From positions 178,932,001 to 178,996,000 of the forward strand of contig OZ038378.1 in assembly GCA_964036045.1 (NCBI GenBank): a stretch of DNA of 64,000 bases, read 5' to 3'. The notes below the pieces were generated by a model. It was not told the origin of the DNA, did not search any database, and was given only the letters and a program-made list of their open reading frames with translations. Below are positions 1 through 24,360 of the stretch, in pieces. The DNA comes from Eutreptiella sp. 'Long Island Sound 2002'. Lineage: Eukaryota; Protista; Euglenida. Both the position numbers and the translations under genes were made by a program. Positions within the stretch are counted from its first letter, which is position 1, and every line of letters starts with the position of its first letter.

Positions 1-2989
1 TCCCTTACAGGGCCCTGGACAATCACCCGTTCTTCCCTTCGCAGAGTGTGTTGGGCCATTGTTGTCTGCTCTGCTGTGGAGGCGGTGCATGTTGCTTCGT
101 TTGTTTGTGCTTGAGGCCCAGCACTTGGTTTGCCGTGGCTGTGGCTGGTGCTGCAGGGGTCGTCCTGCAGCAAGCAAGCAAGCAACAGCAGCAAGCAGCA
201 GGCACATAGAAACTATTTGTGGGGACACTATGGCTCAAAATCAGCATCCAAGTAGCCAAAAACAATTGCAGAGCAAATGTGCATCATCTAAAATACGTAG
301 CATATCATTTTGAGCCATACAGCCTGTTATATGGCCAATTTAGTGTCCAAAAATGGCTATTTTCAGCCGGTTTTTAGGGCAGTTGACCTGAAACTTCAGA
401 ATGATGGCCAGTGTGTCAAGCAATTGTCTTCAATGAGGGCCGTTCTTCTTCCACGGTGATTGGACCATCACAGGGTTGTAAATGGGTGTTCAATGAGGCA
501 TGTCTCACACTGTGGTGCCATGCCATGGTTCATTTCGAGGTGAAAATGATCCGTTTTCAACCAGGTTCAAGAGAACCATAAAAACCCAGCTCGGTCCTGG
601 ACGTAAAACTTGATAGGCAGGCTCCTCCCTCAACATCACACCCGCAATGGTCAGAGGCAAATTGGATGGTATGATATACAGCTAGTGTCCAAATATGCCC
701 CAATGAGTGGATGACATATGCCAGGGTGGACAAATATCTTTGGGCCATTTTTGGGTCCCAGACCCCCCCCCCCAACAAGACGCCCTGCAGCACAGGCCTC
801 CCCATCACCCATACTGGGAGGAGCATGGCAGGAGGCCCATGCAGTTACACATCTGGTGGAGCCGGTAGAGCCCTACCCAACCACATCTGCTTGGTTGCAG
901 CCTGGTGGAATCACACATCCCTGGGGGGGTGGCCTTGCTGAAATGCACAAAACGCACCTTCGCCAGCGCACTGATTCTTGGGAGGGATCGGTGCAGTGGG
1001 TGGCGGTTAAAAATGGACAACTATTGACCATAAAGGAAGTTGGTTTGCGGCCAACAGAGGTCAGTGGTCAATTGCAGTAGACATCCCCAAGGTCACCTGA
1101 CAAGAAAAGTTCCATTGTTCTTGTAGCTTGGGCGAGCCCTGGTCGATAAGCGTTACACGCTTACCTGGGGCCGTTAATCGATAATTGAGACTTGTTGTCC
1201 TTAGCGGGCTCTACCTCAGGATGCGTCATTGGGTAGTGCTCCCGCTCCAGCGAGGGACATTTCAGGGAATTCCAGGGCTCGGACACGCACGGGTCAAATG
1301 CGGGTGATCATGGCCTCAACCCGCCATCTAAACCATCGGAGGCAGGCCCTTTAACGATTGGTAAAATTTGCTTTTGACCTGTTTTTGACTTCCTGGTTTC
1401 CCATGGTAGCCCTACCCTCGCATGGGCCAATGGCGCTACCATTGCTAGGCCATTGCCCTGCATACATCATTCAATTTGGGCCTTTTTGTGGGGACTGTCG
1501 AAAACGGGTTCTCGTGGTCAAAGACACCCTTTTTTTGCGACCCAGATGGCCCCGCTGCATTTTTGGTATCAGTTATTTTTATCTGACTTGGGGCCCATTT
1601 TCAGTCCCACGGTGGGCCCTTTTCGAGGCATTTTGGGGATCGTACAAACAAACGGGCCTAATGTGGGCATCGTGGTCCGAAAAAAGTCTTCTAATCATCT
1701 GGGGGGTGGAGGGGAGATCACTCTGGGACCCACTTTTAACGCCCCTCTTGACCCCCAAAGCCCCCCATAAGGAGCGCGCCCGATGCGATTCTACAGCACA
1801 TGGACCAGACATCAGAGGGGGTTAGACATGCAAATGCAATGTTGAGGGCCTGCGCATGAGCGCTCACGTCTGCGGCACGCAGTGCACCGGCCCCCGTTGG
1901 GGTAGGGCATCGTGCACCGTGGAAGGCCTCACGCACCGGATGTACCACCACAAAAATGCACGGGGCAGTCAGTCACGCCCGCACCTCAACACAGCGCCGC
2001 CCGACTGGCAAATCGCTGTCCGTTGTCGCACCAACTGTGCGTGGGTTGGGATTAACAGCTGAGAGCGCCAGCAGCTGTCGATCGGCCACCAAATGCTTTC
2101 AGTTGACGATCCGCGGCGGCCGGCTATCCGCGAAATGCGGTGGATTGATCATCGACAGCCGTGGGTTAGCCCCAGGAGACGGCGACCTGCTGCGTATCCC
2201 GCTGGTCTCCTTGGGAGGACCGTTTTAATTGGGCAACAGATCGCTTTCCGCACCATGCCACGACCCAACCATTAAGGCAAAATCGCTGGGAAATTTGCTG
2301 ACCGACCGACCTAAAGCCGTCGGAACACACCCACCCGTGTTGCGAGGGTGTCTCCTATGGAAAACCCCGTAATGCGCACTGTGGACGGCAGCATCACGAC
2401 CTTCGCGACCGGCTCTTAGCCACCCCCAAGAGGATGGCATGCGACCCCGGACAAGCGAACGTGGACCTATAACCGTCGCCGAGCCACCGACAGCGGTCGG
2501 TCACTTCGGGGCAACAGAAGGCAGCGCGGCGTCCTTGGGCCTGCCGCCCTCCGTGCGGCACACCATAGGCAGCAGACCCAACGCCCATGTCAGACCTGCG
2601 GTGCACCCTCACCCTCGCCGGAGCTTGTCAGGGGCAGCGTGATTTGCGTCCCGGCGCATGTTCAGTGTCCCGCGGCCCCATGCCGTGACAGCCCAACCAA
2701 CCGGAGACTGTCAAAATCCGCCGGTTGATCATGAGCTGGGGTCGTTTCCAGACACGCCACCATCGTCCGGCAGGGGACCTGAGTCGCGTTAGGAATCAGC
2801 CCCACGCCACGTGCCACTCAGTGATATCCGCTCTTGTCGAATCCCGAATTCAGTAGGAATCAGCCGCGTCCCGTGTCCGATTCAGTAGGACCCAGATCCT
2901 TCTGATCACACGTGACCTGGCGGACGCTCGCAGCAAGTTGGGTCGGTTCACTGCGGTGCTGCCACCGCAGCCAAGCCCTGGCCCATGGC

Positions 2990-5900
2990 TCACACATCTC
3001 TCGGGGTGCTGCTATTCACTCGGACCCGCATGTGCGCGCTCAGCTCCGCCGAGTACAGTTTGCTCGCCATCGTCGGGGTGATGCGGTGGAACGACATAAA
3101 CTTTTTGATGGCGGCGTGGGCCTTGCCAAACTGCCCTTGGGACAGCCCCGCCCACGACACGTCGGTGATGGCCACGTGCGCCAGATTCCAAACGCACGAC
3201 GCCGTGCGCTTGTCCCCCCCTCCGCACACCGTCTTCCGCCCGCAGTCGAGCCACGGCTCGGCGGGAATCGCATCGAAAAGCCCCGCACTGAACATGGCAC
3301 AGGCCCCTCCGAAGTGCCAGTACATTGACATGGGCTGCCGCAGCTGGGGCACACCATTGCGCTGCCTGCACATGAACGCCATTGGACTTTCAGACAGCCA
3401 GACAACCAGGGAGATGGGGGAGATGGACAAGTTGGTCGGTGCATTGAGGCGGGGTGGTCGAACGGGGCTGAGGTTGGGATGGGGGTCCGAGGGGAGGAAG
3501 GGGGGGTGACACTCCTCCATGCTAACAAACAGCTGAAAAGCTTTTAGCACTGAATGCGCCGAAAAACTTGTTTCAGGTTGTACAATTGGAGTCTGGATGC
3601 ACCCTGCCAATCCCTGGAGCGGATGCTGATAAATCCGGGAGGTCTGTTGCTGGACGCTGTTAATTCTTAGACAATCCTGGATAGATGTGGTTTTTCCTGG
3701 GGATTTCTGGATGGATGCTGTTAATCCTTGGATATTCCCAGACGTTTGCTGTTAATTTCTGGATGCCGCAAATTCTTGGAGGTCTTTGGATAGATGCTAA
3801 CAATTCCTGGGGTCTCTGGATAGATGCTCTTCATTCTTCGAGGTTCCTGAACGGATGTTTTTTCTTCCTAGACGTCTGTGGATGGATAGTATGACATCTT
3901 GAATGTAGGATTGTGCTTCATCCTCACCTTCCACCAAACTTTGGGCTGAATTCAAAACCACCACAAGGGAATTCTGATTTTTTGCTATTTTGCGTGTGCT
4001 GCAGCCTGTTGCCTGCTGCTTGCTGCTGCTGCTTGCTGCTGCTTACTAAAGAGGGTAGCTCCATCCTACAGTCTAAACAGGGTAAAACCTTATTGGTTCA
4101 CAACCTGTGAACGCTAACCCTAATTAAGTGTCGTCCTCCAGGTCCAACCGCCTGACCCCCCCCTCCTCCTGGCGCCTTGGAACCCCGGAGGAATGCTGAG
4201 TTATTGCACGTGTGCACAAGCGGCAGGCAGTACAAAGCTCAGAAAGAAAATTGGCTCGTCAGTGGCCTACAAGACCATAGGGACCCCCCCACTCCCAGCA
4301 GCCTTGCCCCCCTCCCAGTCCCCCCCCTGTCCATTGAGACCACGTAAGCACCTGGGTTGGTTTTTTTTGGGGGGGGGGGGGGCTCTATTGCCCCACTCCC
4401 CCCAAACCCATTCAGGAACGTCCGGGAGTTCACAGCATCCATTTGGGAACATCTCGGAATAAACTACAAAGATTGAGTAAGAGATTCAGCAGGGCCTGCG
4501 AGGGACAAGTGCTAGAAGTGGCGACCAGCTTTCACATTGTGTCAAAAATTGCCAAAAAAATTGCCATTTTTCAACCACTTTGGGTGCAACCTTTTGTCAC
4601 CCTTTTGACCTGATTGGCACCCAACCAAGCCTTAGGGAGGAAACACGCAGTGGCTCAGCAGCACCTCATCCAGTGGACCTTATCCTCCATGAGACTGATA
4701 GGACATGGTTCCTCCGTGGTCTTGTTAGCGTCCACGGTACACGGCTTATCCAGTGTCATGCAGCATGTCAAGAGGTTCTGCTCCCGCTCCCGTTTCTTCC
4801 ATCCCTTGCAGACTGCCCCTTTGTGGCCACGGGCCGGTGGATGGGCAAAGCCTGGGGAGAAGATAGAGGCAGGGACGAAGGCTTGTGTTGCAGGTTTATT
4901 GATTGAATTGCCTCAGGCACTTCCAGAGAGCAAACCAGGAAGTGGGGAAGGGACACTGACACTGGGTGTACTACCCAATACTCCCCCCCAGCCTTTATGG
5001 AACGCCTCCCCCTCCTTCCCCACAGCACTGGCCACTGGGTGTACTATCTGGTAACCCACCAGGTTTTATGGAATACCACCCTAAACCGCACACAGCACAC
5101 ACTATCCCCCAACCCCCTTTTACGCCCCCCCCCCCTCCGCCCAACACACAGAGGAGGAGGAGGGGGAGCAACAGGAGGATCGGGCAGCTTAACCAAGTTG
5201 ATGCATAGCAGCCAATTTGAGAGCTAACTTGGGTTGGGAAAGACCATGAACAATTCACTGCAACCACAATGTTGCATTGGATTCCTCCCTGAGCAATTTA
5301 AAATTAGGAGGGGGAGCACTTGTTATTGCAATGGTGTGTTTGCCGCATCCTTAATGTCGCTTTGGGAGTCCTGGTGGTCTTAGGCGGCTTCTTTGGCAGG
5401 AAAAAATTGGTGCAGAAAATGGTGAAATGGGGGCTGTTGGGGGGGGGGGGGGACTCGCTTTTTGGAGGAAAAGGTGGGGGGCGGGTAACAGCCTGTTTTT
5501 GCCATTTTGAAACTGTAGGTCCTGGGGGCATCTGTGAGAAGGACTAGTGACAGAGACGAGAGATCTCTCAGGTAGCTATGCTGTCTCCGGAATTCTCCAC
5601 ACACGGTTGGGAACAACTGGGGTCGAGGATGCAAGGGCCACAAAACAGTGTTTTCCGCCATCCTCCACTCACCCCACAACTTGACTTGAAATGGAGAGCT
5701 GGTGCATTCCTCTGTAGCATCCCCGTATTTCTTTTTATATGAGCTACTTCTCCGGCACATCAGGTGCACATGACCAACACAACACTCAGTGTCGTGACTA
5801 GTGTGTAATTTTGTTTATTGATGCTCAATACGCCAAGCCAAGCCAATCCAATGATTGGTTCAGATTGCAGCCTCTTGCTTATGTGCCCTACCAATGTAAT

Positions 5901-8900
5901 CATTTTTGGGCTGGGATATGCTATCCTTGCAATTTTTGTATGTCTTGATCATCTGTACTTTGGTGCAGTACTGCCGGATGAATTTCTTTTAATGTTCACC
6001 AAACATGCATACAATCATCTAATTGCCCAAGAAGAGGAGGGTTGCAGAAAATGTAGAGACACCACATGCAAATCAAACATACTGAACAGCGTGAAACGTG
6101 TAAATTTGTGAGTCAAACCAGATTCTGCAACATTCAAAATCAAAACAAATAAGCCGCTGTCTCAGTGCGACAAACCCGGCCAGTCAAGCAAATTACAAAT
6201 GGGGGCAGAGACCCCCAGACAAAAGCAAGTGCCAAAATGGGCCAACCCTTTTGGCACTGCGGGTGCCAAAATGGGACCCCCCTGAAAAGCATTTTTAGAC
6301 CATAAGGGGAGCACAAAAATTGCCTTGGCATGTCACTACCCCCTCAAAAGCATTTTCAGATCATCAGTGTCCCATAAAAAATGGTTTTGTGAAACATTTT
6401 GAGAATATGAGGGTACCGCAGAAATAGTTTCGTGTGCCAGTGCCCCAGATGCACTCAGATGCACTTCGAGACCATGAGGGTGACACAGAAAATGAGTTGG
6501 AGTGTCAATAGCCCCTCAAAAGCATCTTGAGACAACGAGGGTACCACAAAAAATGGTTTGGTGTGTCACCAGCCCCTCAAAGCATTTTGACACCATAACG
6601 GTAACACAAAAGTGGCTTGTTGACAGTTCTCTTGATGAGATTGAGGGGGTGAAGGGGAGAAAGGCTGCCAAAAGAAAGGCTGCCATGGAAAAAGGTACAA
6701 GTAGCACTGCAGGCAAGAGTACCTACCAATGCAGGCCTTGCACCTAAAGATGCCCCAAGGCCAGCGGTAGTAAGACCCTTGGTTCCTTCATGGCCCATGC
6801 CCAAGCTGCAAAATCCTCTGCTGCCACCAAGAAAAGGAAGCAGGGTCAAAATTCAGGTTCCTGGGACATTTATAGTGGTATGTTGATGATTTTCGTGCTG
6901 CGGCCCGCTTTGCCATGCATTTCAAGCTAAACGCCTGTTTTTTCCGACAAGGCGCATTGGAGTGCACCATCGGTGCAAATGGTGTTCACCATTCTCCTTA
7001 GTCCCATCATTACCAACCCAGTTGAATGCCACCACTCCACTTTCCCACTCACCAGATTGCAACAAACTTCAGATCAAAAGCATAAGCAGCATCAAATTCC
7101 TTGGAACACTTGGCAATATTGCCATCATACTCAAGCAATCAAGCCCTACCAGTGAAGCTCCTTTGTCCCCCTCCTTTGCAGGGGGGGGGGGGGGATTGCG
7201 GTCTGGGGGGGTCGAATCCAATTGCGAAAAATTGCGGGAAAATTGCGATGTCGTAAGCGGCCCTCCTGAACCCTCAAGGTGCAACAATATTGTGCACAAC
7301 AGGGTTTGAACCCAGGACCTTTGGAAGTAGAACCTAGTACTACTACCAACTAAGGTATGTCAGGATTTGACAACCTTGAAACATCAGAGAGTGGATGCCA
7401 TAGTAAAAAAAAAAGGGGGGGGGGTGAGCGTCCTTATGGCACCCCCTGTCTTGAAGCGTCAAGTACAACATGGAGTCTCATTGTTCTGCACCAGCGTGGG
7501 GAGGCAGTCAGAAAATTGGGAAGTGAGAAAAATTGCGGGAAAATTGCGGGAAATTGCGGGAAATTGCGAAATTGCGGGAAATTGCAAAAAATTGCGAACC
7601 TCAATCCCCCCCCCCCCTGCCTCCTTTGCCTCCCTTTGTCCAATCACCCTGATTGCCTTGGCAGCACGTAGGTGTTGCTTCCGTAACATCTCCGCACCAT
7701 GGATTTGGTGGTGCATGTGTTTAGCGATGAGAGACTTCACCTTCTGTGCTGTGTGGTACAGCAAACAAACCCAGAAATCAAGAAGGCTTGTGTAATGGAA
7801 GGCGGCATGGACCGGGCTGATGGCATTTGCATGTTTTGCTCCCTGATTCAGAATACTGCACCATGTGTAAATGTGGTGGGTGCACACTGTAGCGGACACA
7901 GAACACCCATGTCTGACAGTGTCCAGGAAGACATGCGGGCGTCAGGTTCTGGGCTGCGGGCAGTGTTTAAACATTGGGAGGGAATACGTGGAGTGTTGCA
8001 GGCGGGGGGGCGGGGGCTGAGCGGGTATGGGGCGGGCACTTACTGCAGAGGCACAACCTAAATATAGCGGGATCGTATGGTCCGTGGCCTTCCTCTGCAA
8101 GAATTTCAACACATTGGGCAGCACCATGTAGCTGTCGTCATCCGCCAGGAGGAGCCATTTATAAGGGCGACAACTGATGTTCGCATGGTGCAACGCAGGA
8201 ATCCTGAGCATAGCGTATGGACCATCAAGCCCTTGGGAGGGGAGAACCTCTGCTCTGGAAGGGCGACAATTGGTCAGGTTTGCTGCCACCCATGGGCTCA
8301 AGTCGTGCCTGCCGTCGCAACCTTTACCATCAACTTGCCCTTGCATATGGCCCGCAACCATTCATCCAGGAGTCCAGGGTCTAGGCGTCTCGTTGGGCGA
8401 TTCTGAGGCTTGGAAACCACAAAAAGTGGGGGGTTGCGGGTGGACTAGGTGCCCTCGGAATTCGGTTTTGAGCCTCGCCCAAGATACGGCCCGTTCTTGG
8501 TTTCGGGCCTGCTTGACACAAATAGCGCACATTTAGGCCATTTTTGGCCATTTTTGGGCCGTTTCTCGGACATATCATGGAGTTAGAGGGCAACAAAGAG
8601 CTCTTGGTCACGGGGCGATCGAGGCGCACGTGGAGTGTTCGAACCGTTTGCCTTCGTTTGGCCGTTTTGAGTGGGTTTCGGGGCCTTTTGGGGCCAAAAA
8701 AGGCTGTTTTGGGGCACAAAATGCGCAGTTTTGGGAGGGCACCTCCCGACTTGGCGCCCCGGCCCCGGGGCGCCACCGGTGAGTTTTTGGCTCAAAACTT
8801 GGGTTCCGCAAGGGCACACACACACACACCACCGGTAATCCCCAGCGTTGTTCCCGGTCCAGTGGGAATGAGCCTTTCCAGGATGGTTCTCAAAAGCCAC

Positions 8901-11680: not shown

Positions 11681-14162
11681 AAAACTTATTTTTCTACTAA
11701 GTAATTTACTTAGTAAAATTTTTTTTTCTACTTAGTAGTTTACTTAGTAAAAAACCCACCCCCAGAGGAAAAACTTAGTAAATAAATATTTTTCTACTAA
11801 GTTTTGAAACCTGGTAAAAAAAATTTTGCAAAAAAAATTTTTTCCTAAGTTTTACCACGGACCCGGGAGTGCAAGGGTATTTCAAAGCAAACGGTGGTAC
11901 CCTCCACTGATGCAAGCAAACAGAGCACAGGTGAAGCGACTTTTGCATTGATGCTCTGCCAATGTGATTCATGTAACACGAATGCTATTGGGGGTCCAAA
12001 GGATCGGCAAAGGACTTCTAGGTATGAGAATAGCACACTCTGTACCGTTGCATATGTTCAGTTTGCATAACAGGCACAGGGTGTGTGGTACCGGCTGATG
12101 AGGAGGAGGCGATTGAGCATGGGGCTGGTTTGGCAACCGGTTTAGGGCCCGGTTGCGCAACCTGACAAGCCTGTTTGGGGGCTGGCTTTGCTCTTGCCTT
12201 GGTGCAGGCACCAACTTCTTTGGGGCGGCGAAATCCTTAGGGATCCACCACAGTGCGCTGTGTGGGCTGTGCTGGCGTTTGGGGTTGCTCAAGGCTTGAG
12301 GCTGTGGCGATTGCATCACCCAAGTCTCCAGAGTCGCGGGCATTACCCCTATCGCTCCGCAGTTGAGCTTGGAGAGACAATATCACAGAATACACACAGG
12401 TGACTGGTTTGAAGGAATGGGAAAGCAATGCAAGAACGTGTGTGTGACAGATGGGGACCCGCCGCAATAGATAGTGAAGTGACCCCTCCGCCCCCAGGGG
12501 CAAAGGGCACCTGCAGCGTGGCAAATAGACCGGGCATACACGAAGGGACTGCAGATGTAGCAGCATTGAGAATACAACAAGCTGTGCTGTTGTGCTGTTC
12601 CACTGATTAGTACTTCTGTTGTATTGAAGATTGCAGTCCACAATGTCCTTGCTGTCGAACAGACAGGCTGTCATTGTTAAACAAGAGAGCGGAAGGCTGG
12701 TTTGCTGCTGTGTAGTGCAACTGGCATCTTGCACTTTACCTTGCCTGTGACCTGTATTTGTTGCTCAAAATTCATCTGTGTTCATGGGGAAATGGGGTTG
12801 GGGAGGAAATGCACGGTTCTGTGGGTGAGAGTGGAATGCCAGCCCTGCTGCTCACCCTTGCGGCACAATAACCCCATGCTGTCCATTCTCTTGCGCAGGC
12901 AGGCTCCATGTGCAGTGGTTCCATGAACTTGAAGTTCAGAGCTCTCCACAGCGTGTAATATGCGAAGTGGAATGCAGGCTACGCTTCCTAATTACCAGCT
13001 GTTGCGGACTGAATTTCCAAGCATTATGCTCTTGCTGTTAGCCGCTATGGACTCTAGCACTCAAGCAAGCCACTACAGGCCTGGGTCAACGTGGTGTTTA
13101 AAATACCTGCCCTTACTACCCTCTATGGAGATAGCTGGATGTTCCGCCAAGTTTGTGCTTGGGCTCAGGGTCCATGAAACCGACTGCCCAAGTGCAGAGC
13201 TATGGGGGGCTAGGTCAGGGGACAGGCGTCTGGTTCTCCAACTAAACTTGATGCACATTGCACTGCAGTGAACTGCTTTTGTCAAGCATGTTCCCTGCCC
13301 CTATCCTGCCCATCACCCTGGCACTGGTCCTAACCTGAACGCGGGAGAGCAAGAGGTGTGGGGGTCGCGAGGCTCAGCAATTACTACATCTATGCTGCAG
13401 AAGAGGGCCGCACGCACCATCCCTCCGCAGATGTGTACACGTATCTGCAGTGCTCTCGGATATGCAGGTTGTTGGGAACTCGGGCTCCATCAAGCCTGCT
13501 TGGTGGCCATGTGATCCAAGCAGTGCCCAATGATTCAGCAGTCGAAATGGAAACCTACATTGTGTCCCCATGATATCGAGTTCTGACTTCATGCTTAAAT
13601 CCACTGACTTCATGCCTGACTGGATATCCATCTTTTCTGTATTTCAAACCCCCACCAATCTCCTTTGAATGGTTCTTGCCACTCATGGCAGCATCCACGA
13701 ATCTTGTTGAGTGGGTTGGCAAAAAAATGATACTTACAGGGGATAACGCCAACTTGACTGTGATTCAATGGCCCCCTGAACCTTTAGTCAGAAATGCAAT
13801 CTATCGTGAGTGGTCCCAGAAACCTTTTGCAGCATACAATCAAGGATCCATGTTTGACAGGCAAGGACTTGCGACAAGAAACTGCGAAACAGCGCTCTTC
13901 AATATGCACGTCCACATGCATTGGAAAATGGTTTTTCTTCGAGCCTTGAGATCATGTTCCGCAGACGGATGTCATCATAGATGCTCTTGCGCATTTTCCG
14001 GATATGGAGAATGCAATGTTGTCATATCTGTTCACCAGGAGGTTTTCAAACTGAAATGCTCACTGGAGTAGAGTGCGTGCAGTCCCTGATCACATGTGCA
14101 CACAATCGCTACCCGAAGAGGCAGAATTTGCACATGCTCTGATGCCTACTTGGAAGTTTGCG

Positions 14163-14579
14163 AAGTAAACCCCCCCCACCTTTAGCCCTCCCGGGGGATA
14201 TAGTATTCTTGATGAATGCCCGAGCCAAAGGGGGGGTTATAGGTGGGGGGGGGGGGGGTTATAGGTCAGCCCTTTGTGCAATTTTGCTTTAGGCGCTTTG
14301 CGCCATCTGTTGTTTGTTCTGTGTTTTCAGTTTCTATTTATTTTCCCCTCATGGATATTGATTTAGATATGCCCCATGCCGTGCCTGATGACAGTGATGA
14401 CGACGAGGGTGATGACCCTTTTGATGGGCTTCACGATCTCTGTCTCTTTGCACAGCTCTGTCTTTGAAGTTGGGTGAGAAGGGGGGGCTATAGGTCCCCA
14501 GATGACTGAAAACAACGGATGGGGGGGTTATAGGTGGGGGGGGGGGGTTACAGGTGGGGGGGGGGGGGGTTAATCTACT
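14163..14579. mobile_element. Degenerate MITE with AGTAAACCCCCCCCACCT-type ends and GGGGGGTTATAGGT subterminal repeats
   Basis: The left end agtaaacccccccccacctttagccc resembles the reverse complement of the right end ggggttacaggtg(g)nttaatctact. Confidence 0.5.
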
Positions 14580-14620
14580 CAGTTTTACTAATAATATAAT
14601 ATGTGTACAATATTACAGCG

Positions 14621-15134
14621 GATTCAAGGAACACTGAGCATCTTTTGCAAATGTTTTTTGCCTTAAATTCAGAAAAAGGTGAGTGCCATGCATTCCTTTT
14701 TTTTCTGTCAGGGACCGAAGTTGGGATGAGATTTTTCTCCCTGAAGTCCAACAACAACGAAGCCACAACCCATGTACCGCCATGTGTGGCAAGCAATTCA
14801 GGGGAGTCAGGTGATTTTGCTTTCAGCACACTACCATTGTCCAACCAATGCACCCTGTACGCCAACAAATCACCTCGCAGAGGTTGTTAGATCAAAGCTA
14901 GGCAGGCGTATATAGGGGAAAACACCACATACCCCACCATTTTGGGCCTGTTTGGGCCTATTCGCGTACCCTACCCCAAGGGGTTGAATTGTTAGTTTAA
15001 CCCCCTGTAAAATCATTATTTTGTCCAATAAACACATCCCCCAATGAGTTTTTGGTCCGGACCCCCCAAACCCCCCCCACTTGAAACCCACTTTTTTGAG
15101 GTTTCGAGGGAGGGGGGGGGGTGGGGGGGGGGGG
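14621..15134 (+). repeat. Left copy of a ~515-bp direct repeat flanking the YR retrotransposon
   Basis: Nearly identical to 20318-20835. I see about 3 substitutions, one 4-bp indel and homopolymer length differences. Confidence 0.95.
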
Positions 15135-15544
15135 TGTTGTTCTGTACCCTGCTGTTCATCCAAGGTCCACAACAAAGGCTCATGGAACCATAGAAACCCC
15201 ATCACTTGGGTGGGAGGGCGGGCGCCCTGCATGTCGTGACTGGGTGGGAGGGCGGGACTCCCAAGGCAATATTTAAATAAGAAACTAAATGGAGACAGTG
15301 TACAACAATAACAAAACTGCGTAAAACCCCTGTTTCCCTGCAGTAAACAGGTGTTTCACACATAAAACAAGGCAACAATACGAATGGCATGTTGTTCTGT
15401 ACCCTGGTTTCTTTATTCGCGTGTGGTGCATAAATCAATCGCTGGAATGCATGGCAGGTCAGGCGGAGCCCCCGGCCGCTCTGCAGCCAACCGGCCACGG
15501 CGCCAGGTGCATCACGACCTCTAACACCCTGCCTGTATGGCAAG

Positions 15545-18500
15545 TCAGGCTGCCCCCAGAGCACTGCTCTGCAGATTCCGAAAAGCCCCAGATCGACCCT
15601 TGGGGAAACCCAATATCCAAACTGGAGCCGGCAGACCTGTATACGACTGTAGGGCCGTCAGTCTATCAAGAGCACACTGGTGTGCGGCCTTGAAGTCGCC
15701 TTTCCAATCACTGTCTATTCTAGAGAAGCAATCAGCCGGGCTTAGGTCGCCCGGCGCCCACGATAGATAGACAGACGACTGCAGACGACGCCAGACGTAG
15801 AAAAGACGACGCAGGTGTCGGTTCTGTCGCTTGAGACCAGACCGGGCTCGGAACGACGCCACCTACTCCAGGGCCGCCCAGTTGTCGCCCACAAGGCAGA
15901 ACGCAGGCCAGCCAATCTTTTCACAAATGCGCACCCCCCTGATCATGGCCTCCAGCTCAGCCTCTTGCTGAGTGCGCACCCAATTGCTGCAGTGAAAAAC
16001 CCTGCCCCCCAGGGATGAACTCCAGAGACCTACTTTATATCTGTCCCTGTCAAAGGCGGCATCAACATAAATGGCGCCCCGCCTGGCGAGGACAAAGGGA
16101 ATCAGTGGTGGTGGACGCCAACCCTCCAACGCAAGAACCAAAACATGTGTCAGGCTAAGCAGCAGGCGCATGGGGCAATTCTGCAGCCAATTGGGGCCCC
16201 ATTGACAAAAATTCCACCAACCAGAGAGGAAGGGCATACCACCAACGGCAGGGCGCACTGCCCAGGTAAACCGGCCCAAAACCTTTCGAGCACGTTTGCG
16301 GGTAAGAGGCTGGAGAGCCGTCCTCAACCAGACCCCAACCAGAGAGGCCCAACCCTGCGGTGTCGTTTGAATCAAAGAATGAGAGGGATCAAAATTCAGA
16401 TCTTTCCCCAACCACAGGATCCTGGTGACAGGCTCCAAAACACTCTTGACACTGATTATTGCCCCCGACTTCCTCAAGGCCTCGCACAAAGAGGCAGCGG
16501 CCGTTCGCACTCTATTCTTGCCATAACCCACAATTAAAAAGTCGTCGAGATAATGTAAAATCAAGACATTTGAAAAACCCAGGGACGCCAGGATATACCC
16601 CAAAACAGTCTGGCAGACAATGGGGGAGTATTGCCAACCAAACGGGAGGCAATTAAACCCATAAACCTTTCCATCGATGCAGACCCGGAAGGCGCCCCGG
16701 AGGTGGTCGGGGAGCTGTAGGGACCAGAATGCGTTTGTCAGGTCCACATGGCAAGCGACCAGGGGCGCACTTGGCTCTGACTCGACACGTAAGTGTTCCA
16801 GGGATTGCAAAAAAGGGTCGGACAAAAAACTCAAATAATCTGCATCACCTAAAGCCATTCGTGGCAACTGCAAGCTGTGAACCTGCACCATAAGAGCCAG
16901 ATCCTCCACCGAAGGGAGCCCAAAGCTCGCCGGCTTATGTTCGTGAGCCTTATTAAACTTCACCAGGTGCACAATCATTGACGCCTTTGTGGAGTTTTTC
17001 GGGACCGGGAACATGTAACCATTCGCCCCCCCCCCCCCCCCCTCCCACACGCTGAGCACACCGTCGCGCACCAATGCTCTAGCCATCACCAGGCCATCTT
17101 CTGACATACTACGCATGCTGCCCAAATCCCGCGAAGCAACGGATTCAAAATCCTCTGGGGCCAAAAAATTCCAAATAAAAGGGGGTATGCTGATGGAGCC
17201 AATCTGGCCTATTCCCCTGTCCAGGGCGCTCCTGTCCAAACCAATAAGCAAAGTGATAGGGGAAGTGGTATCTTTGAAAATGCAAATCCAGACTTCAGGG
17301 GTAAGGGCATCCAAAGCCCGCAGAACCCTCTCGTCAAAAGAAGACATAGAGATGTCAAAAGCCACACGGGCCCCTCGCATGAGGAGCAATCGAATCCGAC
17401 CCCTTACCAACGGCCGCAAAGAGTCAGGTAACCGAAGCCCCTCCAAGGTATTATTAATCCAGCCCAGCCCCCTTGGAGAGTCGAGCAACCGCTCCACCGC
17501 CTGCAACCGAGGGCAGGAGAAGTCCAGCGGTGCCACCCGCAGCACGTGTGACTTTGAGGGCCATCTCCTTGGGGTTGAGTCGGACTGGCTGCACTGATCT
17601 CCGGGCCCCTGTGACCGAGGACCGCACTCTGCCTGCGAACTTCGAGGCAGCCTGACCGCTGTCAACGGACTTGTCATGACCCGTTGTTGTGGCGCATGCC
17701 TGTACCCCAACACCACCGGAAGTTGTGGCTGTGGAAGGCGGTTTAGGAGGGGCGGTGACTGGGGCCTTGGCCGTGGTCGTCGTTCCGGCCGTGGTCGCTG
17801 AAGAGGGTCTCGGATGTTCCCGACTGCCCGAGGACCGACCGCTGGAGGAGGACCTCTGGGCTTTGCGGCGCTTGGCGGTGGCAGGTGGGGCCTCACCCAC
17901 GATGATGGGCTCACACCGAGAACGGCCTTGTTGCGGAGGATAGGCTGCATCTCCTTCCGAGTCCGAATCCACGATCTGCTTTGAGGAATCTCTGGCGCTC
18001 TTTCTGGACTCTGAGGAGGGCTTCGTGATGGTCGGCTTTTCGTCGAACAGGTCTCGGAGAGACTTTGGCCACAGGAGGGCCAAGTGGGTACGCTTCCAGG
18101 TGAAGCCCGTGTCTGTTGGCCAAGGCAATCGCGCTTCATCGACCATGTCGAACTCATCAGGCGGGGTAGCGTAGTAATGGGCCATTTTAACACTTGCCCA
18201 ACGCCCCCACCAGCAGAGGAAGCGCCAGGGCAGACCGAAGGCGCGCAGGTAAGTGGCCCCCGCGCGCCTCCATGCATGCCAGCGTGCCTCCGCTCGTATC
18301 GAACCTTTGAGCAGCTTCTCCATGTTTTCCTCCAACTGCGCCGCGGAGAATAAGAGGATGCCGTGACCTGGTCGGATACGTCGCAGCCAACGCGCCCAGA
18401 CTGCAGCATAGGGGCCCAGCTGGCGTGTGACCCATCTTTCCCCCCGCTTGAGGCCCCAGAACGAGAAGTGTGACTTTCCCACTCCATTCCTTCGCGCCGA

Positions 18501-19120
18501 GGATACTTCACCCACCCGGGATAGGGAGGAGAACGACAGGACACACCCAGCATACGTGATCCAATCTTCCACCGACGTGCAGGCCTCAGCGATGATCTGG
18601 AGGACGTCAGGACCACCGTACGGTCTGTGGACTTCGGAATCCACTGGCGCCTTTGTGATCCTCCATAGGCGGGTCCAATTGAGCTCCGGTAGCCACCCCA
18701 GTACCACGCATGCTTTGACCGCGGAGACGCAGCCACGGAGAGTGGCTTTTCGGAAGCCCATCTTGAACATTTGGAAGAGTGCCAATTCGACCACCCGTTG
18801 CGCGTCATTCCACGCTGTTCGACCACCGATTTGCACCAGATGTCGGAGATGGGATGCATACGCGTCTCGTGTACCTCCTTTCCATGTGGATAGAATTGCC
18901 GCGGAGACGCAGTTGTGCGGGTCGCAATACCCCAAGGCTTTCCATGCGTCCAAGATTGAGGGCCAGTGGATGGTATCTTCGGAAGCCACCTGCGATGACG
19001 ACGGGCCGGGGGCCGGTGTGGCAGGGACACGGGGAGCCCATTCCGGTTCAAACCCCCCCACCAGCGGGGGGGCGTCCTTTCATTCCAGGAGAGGGCACTG
19101 CCAGACCCAATGGCGCTCAA
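15545..19120 (-). pseudogene. Reverse transcriptase + RNase H ORF of the YR element, interrupted by one in-frame TAG (15863-15865)
   Basis: RT motifs DLTNAFWSL, LPFGWQYSP, HYLDDFL and WLGK. RNase H motifs YVDAA, QEAELEA, GDN and, after the TAG, WAPGDLSPADCFSR. The RT-like sequence proper begins near 17550. Confidence 0.9.
17454..19061 (-). CDS. Tyrosine recombinase of the retrotransposon (535 aa, open)
   Basis: Catalytic set is visible: LSRVGE (R), HAWRR (HxxR), WGRW and MAHYY (Y). A basic low-complexity tail follows. Confidence 0.92.
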   Translation of the reverse strand: MGGFEPEWAPRVPATPAPGPSSSQVASEDTIHWPSILDAWKALGYCDPHNCVSAAILSTWKGGTRDAYASHLRHLVQIGGRTAWNDAQRVVELALFQMFKMGFRKATLRGCVSAVKACVVLGWLPELNWTRLWRITKAPVDSEVHRPYGGPDVLQIIAEACTSVEDWITYAGCVLSFSSLSRVGEVSSARRNGVGKSHFSFWGLKRGERWVTRQLGPYAAVWARWLRRIRPGHGILLFSAAQLEENMEKLLKGSIRAEARWHAWRRAGATYLRAFGLPWRFLCWWGRWASVKMAHYYATPPDEFDMVDEARLPWPTDTGFTWKRTHLALLWPKSLRDLFDEKPTITKPSSESRKSARDSSKQIVDSDSEGDAAYPPQQGRSRCEPIIVGEAPPATAKRRKAQRSSSSGRSSGSREHPRPSSATTAGTTTTAKAPVTAPPKPPSTATTSGGVGVQACATTTGHDKSVDSGQAASKFAGRVRSSVTGARRSVQPVRLNPKEMALKVTRAAGGTAGLLLPSVAGGGAVARLSKGAGLD

Positions 19121-20126
19121 TCTTTCCTTTTTCTCTGCACGTTTTACACGGGCCCACTAGTGGGTCGGATGACCGAACCCACTCGTTCTTGTGCACCTCA
19201 AAGAACTCCACTCCATCCTAGATCCGGAAGCGTTGGGCCATGATTTTCTTTATCCGGGCTCCCGCGGGCGTCAGGCCCTCTGTGAACACCGAATTACTTG
19301 ACACCTGTTTGGATTGTGTGGCATCAGTCTCGTACTTTTCTTTGTATTTGTGCACCGCCGTATAAGTCAAGAGCCACATGGCTTCCGTCATGTTGACCAA
19401 ACCCTCAGTCAATTCGGGGCCTGCGGAGGGGTTTGCCTTTCCCAGATCCTTGTCTGCAGACCCGCTTGCCATCGCCACGTCGTCCCCGTCAGGCTTCAGG
19501 CCAGTCCACACCGTGTCATTCGCCTTCTAGGCATCAGAGAACTCCATCAGCAGGGCACGCTGCTGCTCGTCGCCCCACTTGTCAGACATCCTCATCTCGC
19601 GCTGTGGAATCGGTAGTCGCAGGACCATGGCACGAAGAAACCAAAGCATGCGGACCACCCACTGGGGGTGGTTGTACGCCACGTGCAGGTCGTACAGAGC
19701 TTTAAGGGACAAGGGAGGTATCGCCATTTCCTGTCTGGCAGGCGCAGAAGTCAAGCTGGCGACCTGTGCATGTAAGTCGGAGATCATTTTCTGTTGGTTT
19801 TCCAAGAGCGTCTGCAGAGCCGTGTCATGAAGAGATCCTGGAGATACCTGGGCATTCGCAGTAAAGAGGCCTGTCTCCACATTTAAAGTCACCCCAGCCG
19901 TCAGGACATATCCGATGATGTATTCAATAAACGCGTCCTCATCGCCCGTGAATTGTACCAAAGCCGCGAACTGCCGTATCCACTCGGTACGTCTGGCACC
20001 CAGTCCCCGAAGGCTCTTTAATACCTTTGTACGAGCCAGAGCCCATTCTCGTGCTGGGGAATCTCCTCTCACCGATTCCTGTACCCCCGCCAGAATGTAA
20101 TCCTGGAAATCGATGGACTCCGACAT
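19080..20126 (-). pseudogene. Gag-like ORF1 of the YR element with two in-frame TAGs (19527-19529, 19218-19220)
   Basis: ORFs 20126-19527 and 19511-19218 are in one frame. Continuing past 19218 gives CKTCREKGKIERHWVWQC (C-x2-C-x8-H-x4-C), ending in TGA at 19080-19082. Confidence 0.8.
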
Positions 20127-20317
20127 GGTGAAGGGCAGCGACCGACAGGCAAAAGGGAGAAAATTGAAGGGAAGGCTGGCCTATCAAAGGATTGTTCGTA
20201 GTCTCAGGCCTGCACCTTTTGACTCCCAAGGCAACATTTAAATAAGAAACTAAATGGAGACAGTGTACAACAACAACAAAACTGCGTAAAACCCCTGTTT
20301 CCCTGCATTAAACAGGT

Positions 20318-20835
20318 GATTCAAGGAACACTGGGCATCTTTTGCAAATGTTTTTTGCCTTAAATTCAGAAAAAGGTGAGTGCCATGCATTCCTTTTTTT
20401 TCTGTCAGGGACCGAAGTTGGGATGAGATTTTTCTCCCTGAAGTCCAACAACAACGAAGCCACAACCCATGTACCGCCATGTGTGGCAAGCAATTCAGGG
20501 GAGTCAGGTGATTTTGCTTTCAGCACACTACCATTGTCCAACCAATGCACCCTGTACGCCAACAAATCACCTCGCAGAGGTTGTTAGATCAAAGCTAGGC
20601 AGGCAGGCGTATATAGGGGAAAACACCACATACCCCACCATTTTGGGCCTGTTTGGGCCTATTCGCGTACCCTACCCCAAGGGGTTGAATTGTTAGTTTA
20701 ACCCCCTGTAAAATCATTATTTTGTCCAATAAACACATCCCCCAATGAGTTTTTGGTCCGGACCCCCCCAAACCCCCGCCACTTGAAACCCACTTTTTTG
20801 AGGTTTTGAGGGAGGGGGGGGGGGGTGGGGGGGGG
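20318..20835 (+). repeat. Right copy of the ~515-bp direct repeat
   Basis: Matches 14621-15134. A diverged partial relative lies at about 55705-55835. Confidence 0.95.
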
Positions 20836-21159
20836 CAAAAATGTCGAAAAAATGACCCCCCCTTTTGAGCCGAAAAAGTGTTTCCGGGTCCCGACTCCAT
20901 GGGGTTTGTATGGGGCGGAGTGGGACGAGCGCTTGGGCAGTTTATGCACTTTGCGGCCATTTTTGCTATGTTGGCAGTTTTTGCGACCTCGGTGACCCCG
21001 TGGTACCCACTCTGAGGGGCGTGAGTGGGGATGTTGTGACTGTATATGCCTACTAAGACACGGAAGGACGTTTTTTGCAGTCTCTAGCCTTGCTGAGAGC
21101 CGGTCAAAACCCAGGCCAAAGACGCGAAATGACTGTTTCCACCAATAATGACCTAGTGA

Positions 21160-24100
21160 ATGGGCCGGTACACGACCTGCAGTTTTTCACCCTGGGCAGC
21201 TCAAAAATCGAAGTCTTCGAAACTTGTTTTTATGATATTGTGACCACACAATATGACCATCCAAGGTATGTAAAGCATGTTTTCGGCCGTATTTACGTGT
21301 TTTTCATCCTATTTGGGTATTAGGTCCAAAGGGGGGGGTCTCCCAAGGGATGGGTACACAACCTGCTTATGCAGTTTTTCACCCTGGGCAGCTAAAAAAT
21401 CGAAGTTTTCGAAACTTTTTTTTTTGATATTGTGATCACCTAAAATGACCATCCAAGCTATGTAAAGCATGTTTTCGGCCGTATTTACGTGTTTTTCACC
21501 TTATTTGGGTATTAGATACCAGGGGGGGGGGGGGGTCTCCCAAGGGATGGGTACAAAACCTGCTTCTGCAGTTTTTCACCCTGGGCAGCTCAAAAATTCA
21601 AGTTTTCGAAACCTATTTTTATGATATTGTGATCACCTAAAATGACCATCCAAGCTATGTAAAGCATGTTTTAGGCCGTATTTACATGTTTTTCACCCTG
21701 GGCAGCTCAAAAATCGAAGTTTTCGAAACTTGTTTTTATGATCTGGTGACCACACGGTATGACCATCCAAGCTATGTAAAGCATGTTTTAGGCCGTATTT
21801 ATATGTTTTTCACACTATTTGGATATTGGGTCCGAGGGGGGGGGGGTCTCCCAAGGGATGGGTACAAAACCTGCTTATGCAGTTTTTCACCCTGGGCAGC
21901 TCAAAAATCCAAGTTTTCGAAACTTGTTTTTTTGATATTGTGACCACCTAAAATGACCATCCAAGCTATGTAAAGCATGTTTTAGGCCGTATTTACATGT
22001 TTTTCACCCTATTTGGATATTAGGTCCGGTGGGGGGGGGGGGTCTCCCAAGGGATTGGTGCACAACCTGCTTCTGCAGTTTTTCACCTGGGGCAGCTTAA
22101 AAATCCAAGTTTTTGAAACTCGTTTTTGTGATATTGTGATCACCTGAAATGACCATCCAAGCTATGTAAAGCATGTTGCAGTCCGTATTCACATGTGTTT
22201 CACCCTATTTGGGTATTAGGTCCAAGGGGGGGGGGGGGTACACAACCTGCTTATGTAGTTTTTCACCCTGGACAGCTCAAAGATCGAAGTTTTCGAAACT
22301 TGTTTTTATGATGTTGTGACCACACAATATGACCATCCAAGGTATGTAAAGCATGTTTTAGGCCGTATTCACATGTTTTTCACGCTATTTGGGTATTAGG
22401 TCCAAGGGGGGGTCTCCCAAGGGAATCGGACACAACCTGCTGATGTAGTTTTTCACCCTGGGCAGCTCAAAAATCGAAGTTTACGAAACTTATTTTTTTG
22501 ATACCATGATCACTTAAAATGACCATCCAAGCTATGTAAAGCATGTTTTAGGCCGTAGTTACGTGTTTTTCACCCTATTTGGGTATTGCTTGCGGGGTGG
22601 GGGGTGGGTGGGTCAAACGGGATTGGTACATAACCTGCTTATGCAGTTTTTCAGCCTATACAGCTCAAAAATCCAAGTGTTCGAAAGTTATTTTTTTTGA
22701 CATTGTTTTAGCCCGTATTTATGTAGTTTTTACCCTATTTTGTGTGTGTGTTGATTGGGGTAGATTCTCTGCGAGGTGGACTTGCTGAAGGCAATAGAAA
22801 TTTCAAAACTTGTTTTTATGATATGGTGACCACACAATATGACCATCCAAGCTATGTAAAGCATGTTTTAGGCCGTATTTACATGTTTTTCACCCTATTT
22901 GGGTATTAGGTCGGGGGGGGGGGGGTGTCTCCCAAGGGATGGGTACACAACCCGCTTGGGCAGTTTTTCACCCTAGGCAGCTCAAAAATCGAAGTTTTCG
23001 AAAATTATTTTTTTGATACCATGATCACCTAGAATGACCATCCAAGCTATGTAAAGCATGTTTTAGGCCGTATTTACATGTTTTTCACCCTATTTGGGTA
23101 TGAGCTTCAGGGGGGGGGGGGCTCCCATAGGATGGGTACACAACATGCTTCTGCAGTTTTTCACCGTGGGCAGCTCAGAAATCCAAGTTTACGAAACATA
23201 TTTTTTTGATACCGTGATCACTTAAAATGACCATCCAAGCTATGTAAAGCATGTTTTAGGCCGTATTTACATGTTTTTCACCCTATTCGGGTATGAGCTT
23301 CGGGGGGGGGGGGGTCTCCCAAGGGAATCGGACACAACCTGCTTCTGAAGTTTTTCACCTGGGGCAGCTCAAAAATCCAAGTTTTCGAAACTTATTTTTT
23401 TGATACCGTGATCACTTAAAATGACCATCCAAGCTATGTAAAGCATGTTTTAGGCCGTATTTACATGTTTTTCACCCTATTTGGGTATGAGCTTCAGGGG
23501 GGGGGGGGGGGCTCCCAAAGAATTGGTACACAACCTGCTGATGCAGTTTTTCACCTTGGGCAGCTCAAAAATCGAAGTTTTCGAAACTTATATTTTTGAT
23601 ACCGTTATCACTTAAAATGACCATCCAAGCTATGTAAAGCATGTTTTAGGCCGTATTTACATGTTTTTCACCCTATTTGGGTATGAGCTTCAGGGGGGGG
23701 GGGGGGGCTCCCAAAAGATTGGTACACAACCTGCTGATGCAGTTTTTCACCCGGGGCAGCTCAAAAATCGAAGTTTTCGATACTTATTTTTTTGATACCA
23801 TGATCACTTAAAATGACCATCCAAGCTATGCAAAGCATGTTGCAGGCCGTATTTACATGTTTTTCACCCTATTTGGATATTAGGTCCGGTGGGGGGGGGG
23901 GTCTCCCAAGGGATGGGTACACAACGTGCTCATGTAGTTTTCCACCCTGGGCGGCTGAAAAATCGAAGTTTTCGAAACTGCTTTTTTGATATTGTGACCA
24001 CCTAAAATGACCATCGTGACCACCTAAAATGACCATCCAAGCTATGTAAAGCATGTTTTAGGCCGTATTTACATGTTTTTCACACTATTTGGGTATTAGG

Positions 24101-24360
24101 TCGGGGGGGGGGGGGGGGGGGGGGCTCCCAAGGGATGGGTACACAACTTGCTTCGGCAGTTTTTCACCCTGGGCGGCTCAAAAATCTAACTTTTCGAAAC
24201 TTATTTTTTTGATACCGTCATCACCTAGAATGACCATCCAGGGTATGTAAAGCATGTTTTAGGCCGTACATATGTCGTTTTTGCCCTATTTTGTGTGTGT
24301 GTTGCTTGGAGTAGATTCTCTGCAAGGTGGACTTGCCGAAGGCAATGGAATTTCTTGAAC
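21160..24360. repeat. ~190-195-bp satellite, about 16 copies
   Basis: Repeated gaccatccaagctatgtaaagcatgttttaggccgtatttacatgtttttcaccctatttggg...(g)n tctcccaagggatgggtacacaacctgc...cagctcaaaaatcgaagttttcgaaac. Confidence 0.97.

Follow-up and report, generated by a model that had tools for sequence, protein, structure and literature searches.

Retrotransposons with a gene for a tyrosine recombinase (YR) are described as inserting as circles and leaving no target duplication. For the underlying replication model, which combines split repeats, regeneration of the ends and a circular intermediate, we know of no experimental system. Insertion at a short core sequence without a target-site duplication (TSD) is the expectation for this group (PMC3266345). 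Here we describe one such element from the euglenid Eutreptiella sp. 'Long Island Sound 2002'. It is located in a stretch of 64,000 nucleotides (nt), hereafter called the window (GenBank assembly GCA_964036045.1, contig OZ038378.1, positions 178,932,001 to 178,996,000 of the forward strand). The element copy (15135-20318, 5,184 nt) has a full-length identity of 93-97% to other genomic copies and lies on the minus strand of the window, which is taken as its sense strand; its "5' end" is the A1 side described below, at the right-hand in the window. Both ends of the copy adjoin a block of about 513 bp. We consider it probable that this block is a giant TSD around one defective, VIPER-like copy, whose 5' end would have been joined by the recombinase and whose truncated 3' end would have been end-joined 513 bp away. 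The following comparisons cover 17 of approximately 80 genomic copies of the element, namely the window copy and 16 others (L001-L016).

The duplication was mapped by a BLAST comparison of the window against itself and a repeat search, followed by a three-way alignment and direct reading of the letters. The raw self-match paired 14615-15134 with 20312-20835 at 97.7% identity over 525 columns. Of the outer 7-nt stretches of this match, ACAGCGG belongs to the host flank and ACAGGTG to the last bases of the element, and their likeness outside the block is a matter of chance. A first-pass annotation had described a near-identical direct repeat of about 515 bp adjoining the element. The repeat is real, with its boundaries now corrected to 14622-15134 (copy 1, 513 nt) and 20319-20835 (copy 2, 517 nt). 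Over 513 nt the two copies are set apart by 3 substitutions, to which a 4-nt AGGC slip and unequal lengths of poly-C and poly-G runs are added, and both adjoin the element exactly. The left edge of copy 1 carries the target core G|ATTCA (14621-14626), which recurs at 20318-20323. At its other end, copy 1 stops at a poly-G tract (G10-T-G12), where the novel left junction (15134/15135) reads poly-G|TGTTGTTC.

The block is composed of two parts of different origin, as revealed by searches of the 2.28-Gb assembly. Its left half (14622-14866) is specific to the locus and occurs only three times in the genome, that is, in both block copies and in a 416-bp copy 1.5 Mb away. The right half (14867-15134) is the opening 268 nt of a repeat, termed R, that is dispersed in the genome with more than 2,900 candidate copies. 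Repeat R is uninterrupted at 20564-21177, where it consists of R1, poly-G, a linker and R2 and represents the pre-insertion state on the right; copy 2 of the block continues unbroken into the remainder of R (20836-21177). All 39 scored R copies run across the poly-G tract into the sequence seen at 20836-21177. The diverged relative that the first-pass annotation had placed at about 55705-55835 also exists (55704-55835, 79.5% identity) and is another copy of R. Because copy 2 is native to the right flank and copy 1 to the left flank, with copy 1 broken at the poly-G tract, the pre-insertion locus consisted of the left flank, one block and the rest of R.

The block was absent from all 16 other element copies, as judged from the alignment of L001-L016 and from self-comparison. 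These copies end at positions equivalent to 15135/15098 and to 20318. Since 16 of 16 copies lack it, the block is not a long terminal repeat (LTR). We conclude that it is duplicated host DNA outside the element. The proposals of an LTR retrotransposon and of an LTR-like terminus on a YR element, the latter raised in the first-pass annotation, were both discarded on the same two grounds, the host origin of the block and its absence from the other copies. A search in and near the block found no module resembling a transfer RNA. Just left of the block, at 14512-14576, the window contains G-rich short repeats (GGGGGGGTTATAGGTGGGG...), and long runs of G stand at both block ends.

The element has split direct repeats of its own, designated A (98 nt) and B (53 nt in the window copy, 51-53 nt across copies). 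On the sense strand, canonical copies are arranged in the order A1, open reading frames (ORFs), B1, A2, a unique 104-nt spacer and B2. The layout A1-[ORFs]-B1-A2-B2 was present in the canonical copies L001, L002, L004-L007 and L009-L011, and in the window copy with B2 cut to 17 nt. All these features are on the minus strand of the window. The terminal repeat A1 (20221-20318), with the last bases ...ACAGGTG, forms the complete 5' end. B1 (15354-15406, 53 nt) adjoins A2 (15256-15353, 98 nt), and the spacer (15152-15255), defined by self-comparison and reading, separates A2 from the B2 remnant (15135-15151), which has lost the outer 37 nt of the canonical terminal B repeat. On the plus strand of the window, the boundary between B1 and A2 reads ACAGGAG|TTTCAC, which is the sequence expected from termini joined in a circle; in the window copy, the A2|B1 boundary ACAGGTG|TTTCAC likewise repeats the circle junction. 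The A1/A2 pair also emerged from the self-comparison as an inner direct repeat that the first-pass annotation had not listed. A1 and A2 of the window copy are unlike at 3 of 98 positions. Within single copies the A-repeat pairs show 0-6 differences in 98 positions, and the divergence between copies amounts to 3-7%. This likeness within copies fits the end-regeneration model (PMC6681497). The nearest relative of the window copy is 98% identical to it, and private changes make up at most 1.54% of the window copy.

For the survey of duplications, each locus was compared with itself, the letters were read directly, and the flanks were tested for a TSD of at least 4 nt. The terminal B repeat is kept in 14 of the 17 copies. 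The host base preceding B is G in all 14, and the host sequence following the A1 end is NTT in each case, often NTTCA, like the first bases of B. None of these 14 copies had a target duplication in the flank test. Judged from these junction sequences, the canonical mode is the recombination of a circle carrying the junction ACAGGAG|TTTCAC with a G|NTT(C) target, leaving no TSD.

In one canonical copy, L015 (G000:C17:49972400-49982000), the filled site stands beside an empty one (oriented positions 2264-2481, 7146-7184 and 7535-7791). The target is also present empty 340 nt downstream, where it reads ggaatcgATTCACtcgg; this repeated target joins 218 nt of left flank and 39 nt of right flank without interruption, and both are bounded by (AC)n runs. 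The filled and empty sites side by side reflect either a local duplication or a haplotype mis-join.

Three of the 17 copies (the window copy, L008 and L013) lack the outer part of B2. The loss comes to 37 nt in the window copy, about 49 nt in L008 and about 530 nt in L013, and the corresponding target duplications measure 513, 141 and 16-17 bp. Duplications were found in 3/3 copies with a truncated B2 versus 0/14 copies with a terminal B (exact p = 1/680). Each duplication starts exactly at the canonical 5' junction, and the 5' junctions of all three copies obey the rule G|NT(T). In the window, the junction between the complete A1 and the block reads ACAGGTG|ATTCA, and a G precedes the native left edge of the block, so that the site matches the canonical target perfectly. 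At the left junction, the element begins 37 nt inside the terminal B and shares no microhomology with G10-T-G12. The 141-bp duplication of L008 (C7:73257400-73267300) is 100% identical and starts at G|TTTTC; its 3' joint shows 2 nt of microhomology. That of L013 (C7:27902800-27912300) contains 1 mismatch and starts at G|TTGG. The private changes of L008 amount to 0.25%, its A repeats are identical and its TSD is perfect. These three measures are mutually consistent, and because of them we regard L008 as a young insertion.

In three copies with a common architecture, the two ends of the element are joined to target positions separated by 16 to 513 bp. The 5' end bears the mark of the recombinase, and the 3' end is truncated and connected in the manner of end-joining. 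The data support an irregular insertion mode that is rare and limited to a minority of copies, yet recurrent. The giant target duplication, one of the options considered in the first-pass annotation, gained support from L008 and L013. The same annotation had set beforehand, as a check, a comparison of the flanks of other copies, with missing duplications taken as the mark of a one-off repair event. The outcome was divided, since no flanking duplication was found in 14 of the 16 other copies and one was found in 2 of the 16. Hence the duplication is not a terminus common to the whole family, nor did it arise strictly once. Two further explanations for the three copies were discarded. An older tandem duplication with the element exactly at its joint would demand an extra terminal deletion each time, and the joints of L008 and L013 lack the invariant G at position -1. 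Had a circle been opened inside B2 and inserted in circularly permuted form, the missing 37 nt would stand at the other end, where they are not found.

The strand-level steps and the timing of the duplication we infer as follows. The substrate of the irregular mode would be a linear, uncircularised copy with its 3' end lying inside B2. Such an incomplete B2 end would be the place where first-strand cDNA synthesis starts and which the split-repeat model must regenerate. The recombinase may then have transferred the A1-side strand alone, at G|ATTCA (14621-14626, 20318-20323). The freed host 3' end could have been re-extended over the target, stalling at the poly-G tract. Host end-joining would finally have ligated the re-extended host end, bluntly, to the incomplete 3' end of the element, and the interval would have been left on both sides. 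The element measures 5.2 kb and its terminal repeat 51-53 nt, yet in two of the three irregular copies the break falls inside this repeat. This speaks for a giant TSD formed on insertion, since a random later break would rarely fall there.

The varying lengths of the duplications invite comparison with target-primed insertion of the kind made by long interspersed nuclear elements (LINEs). Here, a nick at the poly-G tract would prime a reverse transcriptase (RT), either the element's own or that of a LINE, 37 nt inside the 3' end of the RNA, and a second nick would follow 513 bp upstream on the other strand, with no role for the recombinase. Priming at staggered nicks yields variable TSDs, such as those of 16-17, 141 and 513 bp, together with a variable truncation of one end, and the window contains LINEs (ORFs at 40275-48264). 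When LINE-type criteria were applied to the irregular copies, their TSDs were indeed variable as in LINEs, but the copies are truncated at the 3' end, opposite to LINE copies. No tail or poly(A) was found at the 3' joint, and the A1 end is complete in all three copies and lies at the recombinase core. Furthermore, all three 5' junctions obey G|NT(T), an outcome that a single junction would reach by chance with a probability of about 1 in 16 to 1 in 64. We therefore consider target-primed insertion improbable.

The native state of both outer junctions could also be explained by a circle consisting of the element and 513 bp of adjacent host DNA, a variant of another option of the first-pass annotation. 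One illegitimate join would have released this circle from a canonical insertion, and a homologous crossover inside the block would have brought it into an empty allele. The order host-A-element-A-host would result exactly, at the cost of a single illegitimate junction. However, an empty allele and two rare events are needed, and in L013 the homology available for crossover would be 16-17 bp only. There is no reason why the illegitimate join should land in B2 each time, and three independent B2-truncated copies with three different duplicated host sequences are left unexplained. Such a history appears very unlikely to us.

An assembly artefact, in which a heterozygous insertion was mis-joined or the block falsely duplicated, has to be considered because the genome is large and repeat-rich and the joint lies in a homopolymer; the filled and empty target copies 340 nt apart in L015 also point in this direction. 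However, the two block copies differ by 3 substitutions and a 4-nt indel, so the same reads were not used twice. Between the poly-G tract and element position 38 there is no overlap that could have misled the assembler, and two other chromosomes carry copies of like architecture. We give an artefact hardly any credence.

Several points weigh against a giant TSD formed on insertion. The copies compared are 17 of about 80, and both novel junctions in the window are known from the letters of the assembly alone. For YR retrotransposons, we know of no demonstration of a linear intermediate or of the transfer of a single strand. Moreover, the window block looks younger than the element that it surrounds: it has 3 substitutions in 513 nt, compared to 3 differences in 98 nt for the A-repeat pair (Fisher p = 0.055, borderline) and a private divergence of up to 1.54%. 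A younger-looking block fits a later rearrangement or gene conversion equally well. Finally, the poly-G tract breaks independently of the element. The third block copy, at L017:4848-5265 (G000:C1:180499847-180500264, minus strand), comprises 416 bp with 1 substitution relative to copy 1. It is inverted, 1.5 Mb away, between an old abundant repeat and unique DNA, and it ends at the same poly-G tract. No YR element was found near it. This copy looks like a templated or retroposed insertion of sequence from the window locus. Because a copy free of the element ends there too, the poly-G tract is a breaking or stalling point in its own right.

The age of the block and the independent breakpoint are among the arguments for a two-step history. 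According to this explanation, a canonical insertion at G|ATTCA was followed by a later break at or near the B2 junction. The 513 bp would then have been copied from the right junction, or acquired in an unequal, illegitimate exchange whose other partner, an empty sister or homologue, had a break at the poly-G tract, with the loss of 37 nt of the element. The host flank ACAGCGG|ATTCA and the right junction ACAGGTG|ATTCA match at 10 of 12 positions, which could have guided a template switch. The dating of the window copy leans towards two steps. On the other hand, this history is needed three times, with the break always at the B2 end and never elsewhere, and for L008 the divergence of the duplication, that of the A repeats and the private divergence each lie close to zero, which leaves no visible interval between insertion and duplication. 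We regard a two-step history as the main rival of a giant TSD formed on insertion and as rather unlikely.

The irregular copies might belong to a second, regular pathway of the family, in which the recombinase transfers a single strand of linear, uncircularised first-strand cDNA at G|NTT, and strand-displacement synthesis and end-joining by the host produce TSDs of tens to hundreds of bp. We offer this pathway tentatively, as a possibility less probable than its absence. If it is true, the points of truncation, at 37 nt in the window copy and at about 49 and about 530 nt in the two others, would mark the start of reverse transcription and would be the first natural read-out of a replication intermediate so far postulated by the split-repeat model.

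The assignment of the element rests on its coding regions as well as on its repeats. The first ORF (19527-20126, minus strand, 199 amino acids) has no family match and is called gag-like from its position alone. It is followed by an ORF of 535 amino acids (17454-19061, minus strand), the catalytic part of which lies in the first ~330 residues and contains the motifs RVGE, K, HAWRR, W and Y. The motif string RVGE...K...HAWRR...W...Y is kept by 13 aligned relatives of this ORF. No match was obtained by Pfam (E up to 10), phmmer or a profile search against PDB sequences. Features derived from the ESM language model placed the ORF at 0.99 to PF00589 (Phage_integrase) clusters. An AlphaFold 2 model from the single sequence was unusable, with a predicted local distance difference test (pLDDT) score of 42, and an alignment-based model reached a pLDDT of 69. 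The latter matched only tyrosine recombinases when compared with the PDB, namely lambda Int (E 3.6e-5), XerA, Cre and Tn1549 Int. On the basis of the kept motifs, the language-model features and the predicted fold, the 535-amino-acid ORF is identified as a tyrosine recombinase. A second long ORF in another frame overlaps the entire YR ORF, at 17454-19120 on the minus strand in the window (an ORF of 1085 amino acids) and at 3480-5738 in L009 (752 amino acids); its translation is rich in Arg, Pro and Ser.

The third coding region (15863-17200, minus strand) is RT/ribonuclease H (RNase H)-like. The RT domain RVT_1 was detected above the curated Pfam cut-off in the window (E 7.5e-13), and the same domain is present in L009. 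Matches to RNase H were weak and below the cut-off (RVT_3, with E 0.0065 for L009 and E 0.14 for the window copy), and the relative P0034 carries PF00075. An in-frame stop at 15863-15865 ends the RT/RNase H-like ORF of the window copy 71 codons before the end of that in L009, and because of this shortening we regard the window copy as defective. According to the ORF coordinates, the gene order gag-like, YR, RT/RNase H-like is the same in the window and in L009. The initial description of a YR retrotransposon is thus upheld, for the YR by motifs, features and fold and for the RT by RVT_1. No inverted repeats of at least 40 nt were found in 12000-24000, and no methyltransferase domain was found in any ORF of the window or of L009; membership in the DIRS1-like group was rejected for these two reasons. 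By gene order and repeat layout, following PMC6681497, the element is best classified as a VIPER-like YR retrotransposon of the order DIRS. The family is thus of a known kind.

Other copies are rearranged at the 3' end. L012, L014 and L015 carry independent internal deletions that start right after the terminal B and have removed the spacer, A2, B1 and 230-310 nt more. The deletion in L016 starts inside B2, and the first element sequence in L003 is the internal B1, joined to the host by a canonical G|TTTCAC junction. The 3' repeat region of the element is a hotspot for rearranged products. L011 (G000:C15:14864500-14874499) consists of element positions 1-4508 followed directly by 3372-5177, so that about 1.1 kb of its interior is duplicated in tandem. 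In the window, directly after repeat R, a tandem array with a unit of ~196 bp occupies 21178-24291, its units matching one another at 82-91%. The array at first suggested the Trypanosoma cruzi satellite, and with it a T. cruzi/VIPER+SIRE origin; this idea was dropped because the unit does not appear to be like that satellite and because the genome measures 2.28 Gb.

One family in one genome thus shows the textbook mode of insertion in 14 copies and, in 3 copies, a recombinase-type 5' junction combined with a truncated 3' end and a duplication of 16-513 bp. The irregular mode appears to be undescribed in the searchable literature. If a fuller count of copies agrees, such failed insertions record the form of the intermediate and the host repair of a half-finished recombinase reaction. 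For annotation, the locus illustrates that long direct repeats flanking YR elements are open to being mistaken for LTRs.

Endonuclease-independent and other atypical LINE-1 insertions resemble the irregular copies in part: they are 3'-truncated, occur at DNA lesions and are occasionally accompanied by very long target duplications from widely staggered breaks. They lack, however, a recombinase-specific junction, whereas the 5' junction here follows the recombinase target rule. DIRS1-like elements (PMC3266345) share with the present family a YR ORF that lies ahead of the pol ORF and overlaps it, but they possess a methyltransferase domain, internal complementary regions and terminal repeats in inverted orientation; here, neither a methyltransferase domain nor inverted repeats of at least 40 nt were found. 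Ngaro-like elements (A1-[ORFs]-B1A2B2; PMC8547959) follow the same split-direct-repeat logic and likewise use a recombinase instead of an integrase, but their YR comes after RT/RNase H, whereas here it comes before. The closest resemblance is to VIPER/TATE of kinetoplastids (PMC6681497). Both have the order gag-like, YR, RT/RNase H-like, with A1 at the 5' end and B1-A2-B2 at the 3' end; in both, repeat pairs are nearly identical within a copy, a methyltransferase domain is missing, and canonical copies have no target duplication. In contrast to VIPER/TATE, three copies here carry target duplications of 16-513 bp, for which we found no report in that group, A2 and B2 are separated by a unique 104-nt spacer, and the host is a protist with an intron-bearing genome of 2.28 Gb.

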